NCBI GenBank assembly: GCA_002269645.1
Contig: NIVC01000352.1
Location: 372,001-436,000, forward strand
Length of the DNA: 64,000 nucleotides
Reading direction: 5' to 3'
DNA from: Macrostomum lignano
Taxonomy: Eukaryota
The number at the start of each line of letters is the position of its first letter. Position 1 is the first letter of the stretch. This document shows positions 37,511 through 43,500 of the stretch, piece by piece. The position numbers and the translations under genes were made by a program. Below the pieces are notes generated by a model. That model was not told where the DNA came from. It saw only the letters and a program-made list of their open reading frames with translations, and ran no database searches.

Positions 37511-40500
37511 TCAAAACTCGATCACGTCGACAATGTGAACGCTGCGACCGTCCTTGCCTGGCAGGACGCCTTCGTCAATCTGCAGCTGCCGGCGGCGCGG
37601 CTTCTGCTGCCGAGGCTGCGGCACCTCGGGGGCAGCGCGTTTGTCACGGTTGCCAGGCTCGGCATCATTGGAGGCTGCGAGGAGAGGGAGAGAAAAGCAT
37701 TATTTTCTAGCGAGAGCAACTGAGGATCTGGGAGGATGGCCTAGCAACTGAGGATCTGGGAGGATGGCCTAGCAACTGAGGATCTGGGAGGCTGGCCTAG
37801 CAACTGAGGATCTGGGAGGATGGCCTAGCAACTGAGGATCTGGGAGGATGGCCTAGCAACTGAGGATCTGGGAGGCTGGCCTAGCAACTGAGGATCTGGG
37901 AGGCTGGCCTAGCAACTGAGGATCTGGGAGGCTGGCCCAGCAACTGAGGATCTGGGAGGCTGGCCTAGCAACTGAGGATCTGGGAGGCTGGCCTAGCAAC
38001 TGAGGATCTGGGAGGCTGGCCCAGCAACTGAGGATCTGGGAGGCTGGCCTAGCAACTGAGGATCTGGGAGGCTGGCCTAGCAACTGAGGATCTGGGAGGC
38101 TGGCCTAGCAACTGAGGATATGGGAGGCTGGCCTAGCAACTGAGGATCTGGGAGGCTGGCCTAGCAACTGAGGATCTGGGAGGCTGGCCTAGCAACTGAG
38201 GATCTGGGAGGCTGGCCTAGCAACTGAGGATCTGGGAGGCTGGCCTAGCAACTGAGGATCTAGGAGGCTGGCCTAGCAACTGAGGATCTGGGAGGCTTAC
38301 CCAGCAACTGAGGATCTGGGAGGCTGGCCCAGCAACTGACACTCTATGAGGCTGGCCCAGCAACTGAGGATCTGGAAGGCTGGCACAGCAACTGAGGATC
38401 TGGGAGGCTGGCACAGCAACTGAGGATCTGGGAGGCTGGCCTAGCAACTGAGGATCTGGGAGGCTGGCCAGCAACTGAGGATCTGGGAGGATGGCCTAGC
38501 AACTGAGGATCTGGGAGGCTGGCCTAGCAACTGAGGATCTGGGAGGCTGGCCCAGCAACTGAGGATCTGGGAGGCTGGCCCAGCAACTGAGGATCTGGGA
38601 GGCTGGCCTAGCAACTGAGGATCTGGGAGGCTGGCCTAGCAACTGAGGATCTGGGAGGCTGGCCTAGCAACTGAGGATATGGGAGGCTGGCCTAGCAACT
38701 GAGGATCTGGGAGGCTGGCCTAGCAACTGAGGATCTGGGAGGCTGGCCTAGCAACTGAGGATCTGGGAGGCTGGCCTAGCAACTGAGGATCTGGGAGGCT
38801 GGCCTAGCAACTGAGGATCTTTTTACCCAGCAACTGAGGATCTGGGAGGCTGGCCCAGCAACTGACACTCTATGAGGCTGGCCCAGCAACTGAGGATCTG
38901 GAAGGCTGGCACAGCAACTGAGGATCTGGGAGGCTGGCACAGCAACTGAGGATCTGGGAGGCTGGCCCAGAAACTGGATCTGAGAGGCTGGCCAGCAACT
39001 GAGGATCTGGGAGGCTGGCCAGCAACTGAGGATCTGGGAGGCTGGCCCAGCAACTGACACTCTATGAGGCTTACCCAGCAACTGAGGATCTGGGAGGCTG
39101 GCCCAGCAACTGAGGATCTGGGAGGCTAGCCTAGCAGCTGAGGATCTGGAAGGCTGGCACAGCAACTGAGGATCTGGGAGGCTGGCACAGCAACTGAGGA
39201 TCTGGAAGGATGGCACAGCAACTGAGGATCTGGGAGGCTGGCCCAGCAACTGACACTCTGGGAGGCTAGCCTAGCAACTGAGGATCTGGGAGGCTTACCC
39301 AGCAACTGAGGATCTGGGAGGCTGACACAGCAACTGAGGATCTGGGAGGCCTACCCAGCAACTGAGGATCTGGGAGGCTGGCCCAGAAACTGGATCTGGG
39401 AGGCTGGCCCAGTAACTGAGGATCTGGGAGTATAGCCTAACTAGGGGCCCTGCAGTAAACTTGGTCGGGACTATTTTAAACATTTTCGATTACTCTTGGT
39501 GCAGCAGTTGCTAGTCAGCGAGCTGAGTACGGCAGTAAAATTTAATAAGCTGCTGGTCCCGCAGCGGGAGTGCAGTCTGGGTGTAGACAATGCAATGCAG
39601 AGCTCCAATTCACTAACACACTATCTGAATTATTTTTAGCTCAGTGTATATATGCAGAATTTTATATACATTAGAATCGATAGACTAGTAACATTAAGCA
39701 CTCCAGTAATTAGCTAACAGAGAGCATTCGAGTAGCGCGAAGGGAGACCATGGAAACAATAGGCGATGCCTTGCTAACAGAAGATAATGCAGCATAATTA
39801 ACCTTATGCTTTTGAGTGCACTATATGTGAGAGCCATCTAATTAAGTTATTCCTCAGTGGCAGGTTAAGCACAGATTGTGTCAATTGAAAAACTGCTTCT
39901 CGGAAATCAATGAGCTGGTGACATATCGATGAGAGTCAGTTACAGATCCATGAGAGCCAGTGACATATCAAAGAGAGTCAGTGACAGATCAAATAGAGTC
40001 AGTGACATACATGTCAACGAGAGTCAGTGACATTAAAGAGAGTAACATATGAACGAGAGTCAGTGACAGATCAAAGAGAGTTAGTGACAGATCAAAGAGA
40101 GTCAGTGACAGATCAAAGAGAGTCTGTGACAGATCTATGAGTCAGTGACAGATTTATGAGAGCCAGCGAGATCAGAGCACCGATGCAGCTTACCGGTGCC
40201 GCAGTTGCAGGTGCGACAGCCGTTCTCATCGTGCAGGTACTGATTTCCAGGACAGGGGTTCACGCAGTCCAGCAAAGGGCATTCCTTCTGCTCCTCATCA
40301 GTCGAAGAAGAGTCCTCCTTGCCAGCGTCAACAGACTTCGACTTGAAGGTGTAGCGGAAGATGATTGGCTGGACTAGGTAGGTCTGGTAGCCGCGGCACA
40401 TGTGCCAGGCCTCGCTGCCATAGGACATGAGATCGCGCTCGCTGATTGGAGGATAGCGGACAGCCAATCGGACGTATTGGATGGTCTTGGCCGAGACTTC

Positions 40501-43500
40501 GTGTTGTTCCTACGGTGCGGTGAGGATACGATATTGTTATAAATCTGCTTTACTAATCTGGGTAGGTAGTGCTCCAACCATTTGTTGCATGATTATACTT
40601 TTTATGTGTATAAAAACGGTAACATGTTTACTCATACCTGCAAATGCACTTCTGGATTTCTATATTTCGATTTGCTTAGTCAAAGCCGTACACTATTCGT
40701 GAAGTTCGTACAAAGATTCTGCTGAATATCCTCAGCTGCCAATTACTATACTAGGCTTTCTAATTAACACCCTTGTTACTTTTACACACCATAGTCCCGC
40801 AGCTATCGGGCTTTTTTCTTGACTAATTGTTTACTTGTTCGACAGTATCTAAGCCCTTTTTTCTGTTCCTAAAAATAGTATATTCGAATAGCTAAGCTCC
40901 CGGATTTTGTGGGGCCTTTTTGTGTTTCTAAAATTATACTAAAATATGTCTAAAATTACTCAAACAAGATTGAGAGAGACGGGGGGATAAGGGGAAGATA
41001 GGGCGGGGCTGAGAGGGAGAATAAAGAGGGAGATTTAAGAGGGAGAGGTGAGGTTGAGATTCAAGAGTGAGGTGAGATGGAGGTAAGAGGTGAGATGAAA
41101 AGGTGAGATGGAGAGGCGGGAGAGAGGAGAGAGAAGTGAGAGGGAGATGAGAGTGAGAGGTGAGAGGGAGAGGCAAGAGGGAGAGACGAGAGGAAGAAGT
41201 GAGAGGGAGACGAGAAGAAGAAGTGAGATTGAGATGCGAGAGGGAGAGGGAGAGGCGAGAGAGAGAGAGAGAGAGAGAGAGAGAGAGAGAGAGAGAGAGA
41301 GAGAGAGAGAGAGAGAGAGAGAGAGAGAGAGAGAGAGAGAGAGAGAGAGAGAGAGAGAGAGAGGGGGGGAGAGGTGAGATTGAGATACGAGAGGGAAAGG
41401 CGAGAGGGAGAAGTGAGAATAGATTGAGATGCGAGAGGGAGAGGTGAGATTGAGATACGAGAGTAAGAGGTGAAATAGAAAGGTGTGACGGAGAGGCGGC
41501 CCAGCTGCCGTACGCAGATACACTGAACGCAGTAAGCAACCGAGTAGCCCCACCTTGGCCCAGATGACAACATTACTGGCCCAGTCGTGCCTGCGCCAGG
41601 TCGAGCGCTTCACAAAGCACAGCTGAGCGGACGGGGCGCGCAGCAGAGTGAAGCCTCTCAGCTGGTTGTGCAGCACGGTTGGCCGGCCGTCCGAGTCCCA
41701 TGACGGCTGCATCAGTACGCGGCCGGAGCCGTCAGTTTTAACCAGCTCGCTTCGGCTTTCAACCCGCCCGTCGGCCTGGCGAAATCGGATCCGGCAGTTG
41801 ACAGTCGAGTCGGCCGAATCCGAACCGTTGCGCTGGTGCTGGCGCATGCGCAGCCCGATGTACAGCACGACGCCAATGTCCAGCAGGAGGAACACGGCCA
41901 GCAGCCAGGCGAAGATGCGGCACAGACGGCGGCGCCTGGCCGCACGGTGGTTGTAAAGCTCGACATACTCCACTGAGTAGGTGGGAGGTCGCTGGTGAAG
42001 AATTATGGGGGGGGATAAATAGGAATTTATGATAACCCCTGAGACTGGAAAGCAAACGTTATAGTGACATCATATATTCCACAGAGAGTGACATCATATA
42101 TTCCACAGGGAGTGACATCATATATTCCACAGGGAGTGACATCATATATTCCACAGGGAGTGACATCATATATTCCACAGGGAGTGACATCATATATTCC
42201 ACAGGGAGTGACATCATATATTCCACAGGGAGTGACATCATATATTCCACAGGGAGTGACATCATATATTCCACAGGGAGTGACATCATATATTCCACAG
42301 GGAGTGACATCATATATTCCACAGGGAGTGACATCATATATTTCACACTGAGTGACATCATATACTCCACGGGGAGTGACATCATATATTCCACGGGAAG
42401 TGACATCATATATTCCACAGGGAGTGACATCATATATTCCACGGGGAGTGACATCATATATTCCACGGGAAGTGACATCATATATTTCACACTGAGTGAC
42501 ATCAAATTTCACACTGAGTGACATCATATATTTCACACTGAGTGACATCAAATTTCACACTGAGTGACATCATATATTTCACACTGAGTGACATCATATA
42601 TTTCAGGACAGCAGGCAGCGAAGCGTATTTTAATGGGTATGTGGGTATGGTGGGTAATGGACATGGTGTAATGGTGAATATAGTTTTACAGTGCGAAGAC
42701 TGCCGGGCATATTACAAAGTTCATACCGTAGTGGCTGTAGTATCTAGACAGGCCGCTGAAGGTAACTAACTAAAGAGAGGTATAGAAAGTTTGCTAAACT
42801 ACTCCATATAGCGAGTTGTCTGGCTAGACTAGGCGATAGATGGAAGGTAATAATAACAAGGGCGGCGCCCCAGCTACACACGGGAAGGCAGTGAGAGAGA
42901 ATAGAGAGCGGGGGAAACGCCCAGAATAGCAGAAATGTGACGGCCAGTTTTTATAAAAAAGTAAAAAATACAGTAGAAAATATTTAAACCCAAAGCACAA
43001 AGGACTAATGAATTAATAAATTTACTAAATATACATTCACATTCTAATCTAATCCATTTTCCATTCACATGGAAAATAATACTAAAAATAGTACAGAACT
43101 CGTATTCTGGAGTAGTTTGTGAAAATAATTTGTTCGTAATTTGTTAGCGGTTTCCTACTGCAAGTAGTGTGATCGCATAAAATCTAATTCTGTCATCTAG
43201 AGAACAAAACATTGGAAATTTTCATATTTAATGTTCAGATGCAGGTACAACTATCAGTATACTCTCAACCTAATATTTTCCACTCGGTTGGTCAAACAAA
43301 TTCAATTAGTTAGGATTAGATCTTGATCTTAATCTCTAAATCTCAGACCTGACTGTGTCCTGCCTAATCCAAAAAGTGACCCTTGTCTAACATCTACTTA
43401 AATTCCCAGATTAGCTTATATATCAGTGCTAGTAAGCCCTAGCACAGGGGTCGGCAAACTTTTTTACCTCAAGGCCGGATGAAGAATCCAGCTCATGGCT

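Follow-up and report, generated by a model that had tools for sequence, protein, structure and literature searches.

A candidate BRICHOS-superfamily membrane pro-protein with an antistasin-like cysteine module and a putative convertase-released tail in the flatworm Macrostomum lignano

Work on BRICHOS pro-proteins treats them as natural anti-amyloid chaperones, each family having a different aggregation-prone client. Among them, the type II pro-proteins chondromodulin-1 (CNMD) and tenomodulin (TNMD) have, besides the BRICHOS domain, a basic processing site and a module rich in cysteines; in CNMD this module, an eight-Cys domain not related to antistasin, follows the furin site and constitutes the secreted product. 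What unites the superfamily is a hallmark of three residues only, one Asp and two disulfide-forming Cys (PMC2751770). In Bri2 (ITM2B), furin-like cleavage frees a C-terminal peptide, after which ADAM10 sheds the BRICHOS domain (PMC5727130). In precursors of BRICHOS-related antimicrobial peptides (AMPs), the BRICHOS domain is followed by a dibasic motif and then by a C-terminal part rich in positive charge, and some of these precursors are transmembrane (TM) proteins (PMC10745061). Here we describe a gene in a window of 64,000 nucleotides (nt) from Macrostomum lignano (assembly GCA_002269645.1, contig NIVC01000352.1, positions 372,001 to 436,000 of the forward strand), whose 351-residue product we lean toward reading as a lineage-restricted (Macrostomum-type) BRICHOS-superfamily type II pro-protein with a Bri2/ITM2B-like layout, a chaperoned client and a convertase-released tail. 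The predicted order of parts is a cytosolic N-terminus, a TM helix, a linker with one Cys, the BRICHOS domain, an antistasin-like three-disulfide knot, a convertase site and a short tail. The region after the BRICHOS domain—knot, convertase site and acidic tail—appears to be new for the superfamily.

The gene is real and transcribed from four coding exons on the minus strand, and is no chance open reading frame (ORF). As an initial annotation of this DNA had proposed, the minus-strand open segments 41991-41554, 40509-40194 and 37674-37511 are spliced in frame through canonical sites, all introns being GT-AG, and their joint translation matches residues 47-351 of PAA85009.1 with 100% identity. 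That annotation's coordinates, 37511-41991, were too short, having left out the exon with the ATG. This exon was located at 49101-48964 by tblastn of residues 1-46 (100% identity), and the gene therefore spans 37511-49101; the four-exon translation equals PAA85009.1 exactly (351 aa, "hypothetical protein BOX15_Mlig025519g1", Macrostomum lignano). Coding exon 1 (48964..49101, minus strand) supplies the ATG and residues 1-46, the predicted cytosolic N-terminus, and ends at the donor GTAAGT. Exon 2 (41554..41991, minus strand), between the acceptor CAG and the donor GTGGGG, encodes residues 47-192, which take in the cytosolic juxtamembrane segment, the TM helix, the linker with Cys112 and the first half of the BRICHOS domain. 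The second half of that domain, an acidic linker and the antistasin-like module fall to exon 3 (40194..40509, minus strand; acceptor TAG, donor GTAAGC), which covers residues 193-298 with its last codon split. Exon 4 (37511..37674, minus strand; acceptor CAG) completes residues 298-351 with a spacer, the convertase site and the C-terminal tail, and ends in a TGA stop (37511-37513); two poly(A) signals, ATTAAA and AATAAA, follow on the 3' side at 109 and 167 nt past the stop codon.

GenBank annotation of the M. lignano assembly draws on a genome-guided RNA-seq transcriptome built with StringTie, TACO and TBONE (PMC5730564), so the exon joins, including that between the 40194 donor and the 37674 acceptor, are transcript-based. 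This last join, on which the initial annotation depended, is also borne out by a relative (P0002) that is colinear over the exon 3/4 as well as the exon 2/3 junction. Two more M. lignano copies, PAA68948.1 and PAA70496.1, differ by 5-6 residues and fit the known neopolyploid redundancy of the genome. The gene product is already deposited, with no annotation beyond "hypothetical protein". The window is eukaryotic in character, and its long introns are dense in minisatellites: tandem repeats lie within this gene's introns at 37715-39430, 39918-40153, 41120-41363 and 42063-42602, and comprise a 28-bp minisatellite of ~62 copies (92% matches), a 21-bp unit in 11 copies, a long GA microsatellite and a 24-bp unit in 23 copies. 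Intron 1 also harbors a transposon fragment (44228-44629, minus strand), a 133-residue ORF with a mariner-type partial DDE domain (Pfam Transposase_1, E = 8e-8).

The family is small. When 1.84 billion representative proteins were searched exhaustively with HMMER and the family profile, only two full-length matches came back, the M. lignano protein (P0001) and P0002, the latter encoded on a 1023-nt Logan contig (L001) from run SRR30276812 and 45% identical overall. The other 12 matches cover profile positions ~259-317 only, which is the module, and a word-based search started from P0002 added none to the family. Within positions 1-110 of the contig, 'tttgtag' directly precedes the region that corresponds by homology to the beginning of M. 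lignano exon 2; the contig thus begins with an apparent intron acceptor, and P0002 is therefore N-terminally incomplete. It comes either from a partly spliced transcript or from a genomic copy keeping the first intron only. P0002 keeps every element: TM helix, BRICHOS domain, module, convertase site and tail core. Region by region, identity between the two proteins is 95% in the TM helix, 81% in the cytosolic flank, 56% in the C-terminal 25-residue core, 55% in the module, 46% in the BRICHOS domain, 41% in the linker, 12-14% in the spacers around the convertase site and 7% in the acidic linker.

The BRICHOS identity of residues 151-236 is accepted from sequence, with the fold as a prediction only. 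PF04089 aligns to these residues over model positions 6-90 of 91, in a first part (41554..41679, minus strand; residues 151-192) that holds Asn155 at the conserved-Asp position together with Cys171, and a second part (40378..40509, minus strand; residues 193-236) that holds Cys230. The curated gathering cut-off is 25 bits; residues 136-247 taken by themselves exceed it with 27.5 bits (E = 3.7e-6), and the full-length protein, at 24.3 bits (E = 3.7e-5), stays slightly below it; P0002 yields 18.1 and 20.9 bits over the same model positions 6-90. The Pfam call is borderline but consistent, and the domain with both its cysteines, as first annotated, is upheld. The spacing of the hallmark residues tells the same story: N155-16-C171-59-C230 in M. 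lignano, D148-16-C164-59-C223 in ITM2B and D98-16-C114-58-C172 in P0002. The ungapped ITM2B register scores z = 4.1 versus shuffles (2/20,000) and is the best of all offsets for 7/7 ITM2B sequences.

At the hallmark-Asp position, 16 residues before the first BRICHOS Cys, all three M. lignano copies carry Asn155 (codon 41665-41667, minus strand) and P0002 carries Asp. In single BRICHOS domains this position is Asp in 97% of cases and Asn in 2.7%, and an Asp-to-Asn change in the Bri2 or proSP-C domain shifts it toward dimers and strengthens its anti-fibril activity; chaperone behavior is altered, not abolished (PMC9627735). The four-region layout likewise fits the superfamily. The TM helix (21 residues), linker (~57) and C-terminal region (111) fall inside the published length ranges, which are 12-33, 24-105, 83-104 and 29-149 for the four regions in order (PMC2751770, Table 1); the BRICHOS domain itself is ~90 residues long. 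Type II topology, the four-region layout, the linker Cys and the BRICHOS spacing are all features of Bri2/ITM2B, along with ITM2A and ITM2C, and Bri2 further resembles the flatworm protein in having a furin-type site near the C-terminus and a short peptide with a beta-prone end.

Not only does the protein appear to be anchored in the membrane, but its anchor is the best conserved part of it. The sole Kyte-Doolittle peak of the protein (2.5) lies at residues 73-93, flanked by six basic residues on the N-side and three on the C-side, a charge balance that indicates the type II topology originally assigned, with a cytosolic N-terminus and one TM helix. In this helix (41851..41913, minus strand; FAWLLAVFLLLDIGVVLYIGL), which would place Asp84 mid-membrane, 20 of the 21 residues are the same in P0002, Asp84 included, and the DNA of the region is 81% identical to the P0002 contig over 136 nt. 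Such conservation suggests a function beyond anchoring. That conservation peaks in this helix and not in the tail had escaped the initial annotation. Ten cysteines are distributed along the protein: one cytosolic (70), one in the linker (112), two in the BRICHOS domain (171 and 230) and six in the module (269, 274, 278, 290, 293 and 295).

An acidic linker (residues 241-267), already recognized at the outset, separates the BRICHOS domain from the cysteine module (40201..40281, minus strand; residues 269-295, CPLLDCVNPCPGNQYLHDENGCRTCNC). The module follows the pattern C-x4-C-x3-C-x11-C-x2-C-x-C with a conserved D and G, and its six cysteines are invariant across copies. Its homology to antistasin domains is well supported by sequence comparison, although the window's own allele is marginally sub-threshold in Pfam: against a PF02822 gathering cut-off of 21.2 bits it scores 20.7 bits in isolation and 16.6 in full context, and the homeologues (P0003 and P0004, with the single substitution L271M) and P0002 reach 22.2 and 22.0 bits, respectively. 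The module-only matches of the family profile are multi-antistasin proteins, some with Kunitz domains, from crinoids, amphioxus, Lottia and an annelid; they match the family profile with E down to 5e-28 and PF02822 with up to 177 bits. A single module sequence searched against PDB gave only weak matches to the mGluR5 Cys-rich domain (E ~0.4-0.8). By contrast, a 33-module profile seeded with the M. lignano module matched antistasin (1SKZ, 2e-7), guamerin (3BG4, 3.5e-5) and bdellastasin (1C9P, 4.6e-5), as well as gigastasin (5UBM) and hirustasin (1HIA and 1BX7). The first designation of a six-Cys antistasin-like module is therefore right as to homology and falls just short, for this allele, of formal Pfam assignment.

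Function is a different matter. In hirustasin, P2 is Cys29, P1 is Arg30 and P3' is Cys33 (PMC3014083), which puts the P1-equivalent of the module immediately behind its second Cys. Alignment to 1SKZ, 3BG4, 1C9P and 1HIA identifies it as Val275, with Asn at P1' and Pro at P2'; P0002 has Ile followed by Pro, in a reactive loop one residue shorter. In leeches an inhibitory domain carries ten cysteines; what antistasin-like proteins do outside leeches is largely unknown (PMC7851590). Residues 241-351 of the flatworm protein contain only six cysteines, which correspond to the C-terminal, reactive-loop-bearing subdomain of hirustasin, the N-terminal 4-Cys subdomain being absent. Where the inhibitors have Arg or Lys at P1 (Met in guamerin) and a loop of fixed length, the family has Val or Ile and a loop that varies between relatives. 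With six of ten cysteines, such a P1 residue and a variable loop, inhibitor function does not follow from homology, and the protease-inhibitor role first proposed for the module is weak, a deduction from the family name. Most likely, the knot serves as a structural or binding module rather than as a classical inhibitor of the trypsin or factor Xa type. The setting differs too. Members of the antistasin family (MEROPS I15; antistasin, hirustasin, guamerin, bdellastasin and gigastasin) share the six-Cys pattern and profile-level homology with the module, and antistasin-like domains occur elsewhere in CRIM1-like, papilin-like and Kunitz-plus-antistasin proteins of crinoids, amphioxus, molluscs and annelids. 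There they form tandem repeats in secreted proteins, whereas here a single copy is built into a BRICHOS membrane protein.

Downstream of the module, a motif scan places a putative furin/proprotein-convertase site at RDKR (37637..37648, minus strand; residues 307-310), the sole luminal R-x-[KR]-R, with RRRR(R) at the aligned position of P0002. The 41-residue tail beyond it, which the initial annotation had correctly quoted along with the site, is the predicted released peptide (37514..37636, minus strand; residues 311-351, AAPEVPQPRQQKPRRRQLQIDEGVLPGKDGRSVHIVDVIEF). It ends in a conserved, acidic, beta-prone core of 25 residues (37514-37588, minus strand; residues 327-351) with the consensus ...DEGVLPxxxGxxVHxxDxIEF, which stands out from the poorly conserved flanking spacers. 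Net charge is +1 for the 41-mer and -3 for the core; the P0002 tail, 33 residues in all, has -4. The 41-residue tail contains no Cys. Among luminal 8-mers, SVHIVDVI ranks third in beta-propensity by Chou-Fasman values; the beta-prone end noted originally is thus present, and fits the idea of a beta-prone BRICHOS client. The basic stretch RQQKPRRR, listed at the same time, fares worse, as it is deleted in P0002, the only relative.

The layout differs from those of its nearest analogs. In ITM2B, the C-terminal peptide carries a disulfide loop; here the six-Cys knot lies between the BRICHOS domain and the cleavage site, and the tail is acidic and lacks such a loop. In CNMD the Cys-rich domain is released, whereas the module described here precedes the convertase site and would stay on the membrane stub; no CNMD or TNMD similarity emerged from the exhaustive family-profile search. 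Nor did that search show similarity to the polychaete BRICHOS-AMP precursors (arenicin, nicomicin, capitellacin and HfBRI). These also come from marine worm-like invertebrates and likewise order a BRICHOS domain, a dibasic K/R-R site and a short C-terminal peptide, but they have no antistasin module. The antimicrobial role initially suggested for the tail is weak, in that a Cys-free core of negative net charge does not resemble the C-terminal parts of those precursors, which carry positive charge (PMC10745061). An arenicin-type AMP was considered for the tail and ruled out by the acidic charge of the core and the lack of Cys.

The initial annotation did not recognize the combination of domains, and it does seem to be undescribed. 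BRICHOS and antistasin were not found together in any publication of the library searched, nor were BRICHOS and Macrostomum, and the published lists of BRICHOS families (13-14 groups) contain no such architecture. An exhaustive HMM (hidden Markov model) search seeded with this family's profile turned up no second BRICHOS-plus-antistasin family, although other BRICHOS subtypes could escape a search seeded in this way.

How might such a pro-protein work? On the reading we favor, the BRICHOS domain would act in the endoplasmic reticulum to shield a beta- or aggregation-prone segment of its own pro-protein, be it the C-terminal tail, the TM helix or both. In the late secretory pathway, a furin-like convertase would then cut after Arg310 and free the 41-residue peptide, which in M. 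lignano may perhaps be trimmed after RRR326 to the 25-residue core. The BRICHOS domain and knot would stay behind on a membrane stub, with later shedding possible, as for Bri2.

Several observations weigh against this scheme, which we advance with moderate confidence. Cleavage, secretion and chaperoning are all drawn by analogy with Bri2, and a specific kinship to ITM2 is not demonstrated by sequence. The family consists of only two divergent sequences, which makes arguments from conservation thin. What conservation there is favors the TM helix so strongly over the tail that the main functional product, or the BRICHOS client, may be something other than the tail. Full texts, and the supplements of four M. 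lignano papers, yielded no expression data for Mlig025519, Mlig020345 or Mlig014342. Structure prediction is of little help either: for the full protein, AlphaFold2 (AF2) with the 4-sequence family alignment gave a mean pLDDT (predicted local distance difference test) of 39.3, which is unusable, and a mixed alignment of flatworm sequences and 14 ITM2B rows raised it to 44.2, with no Foldseek match of this second model in PDB at E <= 0.001. The BRICHOS fold, as in 2YAD from proSP-C, is a five-stranded sheet with two flanking helices. This structure gave the highest target-normalized template-modelling score, 0.51-0.59, only at E = 1.1-2.1 and with ITM2B rows in the alignment; the mixed-alignment fold is not independent, because those rows drive it. 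A PDB sequence search with the whole-family profile produced one spurious match (E = 0.43).

The conservation of the helix lends itself to another account, possible though doubtful, in which the protein resembles proSP-C: the Asp84-bearing TM helix would be the key product and the BRICHOS client, binding a partner or being cleaved within the membrane, and the tail would serve only in folding or sorting. Against 45% identity for the proteins as a whole, the helix reaches 95%, its cytosolic flank 81% and the underlying DNA 81%; a charged Asp is invariant in mid-helix, and Val, Ile and Leu abound in this helix, as they do in the SP-C client. ProSP-C and ITM2A are likewise most conserved in their hydrophobic region, but proSP-C is without any C-terminal region (PMC2751770), whereas the flatworm family conserves a module, a convertase site and a tail core. 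Further, there is no sign of a luminal-side cleavage that would free the helix, and the comparison itself extends to two sequences only.

It is quite unlikely that the gene is instead a highly diverged true ITM2 orthologue, of Bri2/Bri3 or of an invertebrate 'group A/I', in which the ancestral two-Cys C-terminal loop was elaborated into or replaced by the six-Cys knot; that would make it an ordinary ITM2 gene but for a tail peculiar to its lineage. The case for it begins with the hallmark, where the D/N-16-C-59-C spacing is identical to that of ITM2B, and extends to a MAFFT alignment that pairs Cys112 with ITM2B C89, a DSDxxP..V.H[DN] motif and both BRICHOS cysteines. Both proteins also have a furin-type site near the C-terminus, and C278...C295 of the module repeats the spacing (x16) of the ITM2B C248...C265 loop. 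Family-level similarity, however, is undetectable. An ITM2B HMM built from 100 database sequences scores -1.3 to -1.6 bits for P0001-P0004, within the range of 10,000 shuffles. hhalign returns a probability of 0.55% (E = 0.1) over 22 columns only, in which EAWHMCRGYQTYLVQ, from the second part of the BRICHOS domain, is paired with ITM2B FIYRLCHDKETYKLQ. No ITM2 protein was among the matches when 1.84 billion proteins were searched with the family profile, and the order of site and cysteines is reversed: in ITM2B the convertase site precedes the Cys loop, and in the flatworm protein it follows the Cys module. With hhalign and the ITM2B HMM both negative, assignment of the gene to ITM2 was rejected. 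Two further differences from ITM2B are the Asn that the M. lignano copies have in place of the hallmark Asp and the conserved Asp of the TM helix. A common origin of module Cys3-Cys6 and the Cys loop of ITM2B Bri23 was rejected as well: with matches at C, T and C only, the alignment of the two is probably driven by cysteines, and the shared spacing is probably coincidental. The gene is best seen as a member of a separate lineage-restricted BRICHOS family, Bri2-type by layout only, as far as sequence can tell.

A bifunctional precursor of a canonical antistasin-type serine-protease inhibitor and an antimicrobial or amyloid-like peptide, after the annelid BRICHOS-AMP model, is the least probable account and very unlikely: the module's homology to proven inhibitors (antistasin, guamerin and bdellastasin), its equivalence to the reactive-loop subdomain of hirustasin, the shared order of BRICHOS domain, dibasic site and C-terminal peptide, and a P1 Val that could suit an elastase-like target are set against the missing four cysteines, the Ile-Pro and shortened loop of P0002, the largely unknown function of non-leech relatives (PMC7851590), an acidic, Cys-free tail whose basic stretch P0002 lacks, and the place of the module upstream of the cleavage site, by which it would stay membrane-tethered.

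Elsewhere in the window lie further ORFs, mobile elements and repeats. A 361-residue uninterrupted ORF at 3907-4992 (plus strand) with HTH_23/HTH_29 and DDE_3 domains looks like a Tc1/mariner-type transposase that may be intact, and a reverse-transcriptase fragment at 60904-61497 (plus strand; RVT_1, E = 2.5e-16) is a retroelement remnant. The single 468-residue ORF at 58487-59893 (minus strand) combines FA_hydroxylase with an alkylglycerol monooxygenase C-terminal domain (E = 1.6e-29 and 2e-10) and is apparently an intronless AGMO/TMEM195-like gene. Two more ORFs have no Pfam match and may encode lineage-specific membrane proteins: one of 431 residues at 17778-19073 (plus strand), with one TM segment and then a Cys cluster, and one of 443 residues at 53948-55279 (minus strand), multi-pass in appearance. 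Low-complexity tandem arrays at 10600-12300 (plus strand; CLSV) and 29100-30330 (GTHF/ALIL) give rise to spurious multi-frame ORFs, which are not genes.

In its boldest form, the proposal would be a new macrostomid-restricted BRICHOS family that unites a chaperone domain, an inhibitor-type knot and a convertase-released acidic peptide in one membrane pro-protein. We regard this as unlikely; were it true, the knot could regulate either processing of its own precursor or an extracellular protease, and a membrane partner could be recruited by the TM helix, with its Asp and its extreme conservation. Practical value is modest, given a tiny lineage-restricted family, a gene already deposited and proposed activities that are inferred. 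Since transgenesis and RNA interference are available in this flatworm, however, the model is directly testable. The repertoire of clients and partner modules known among these pro-proteins would grow with a BRICHOS family that brings in an antistasin-type knot and an acidic, Cys-free released tail.

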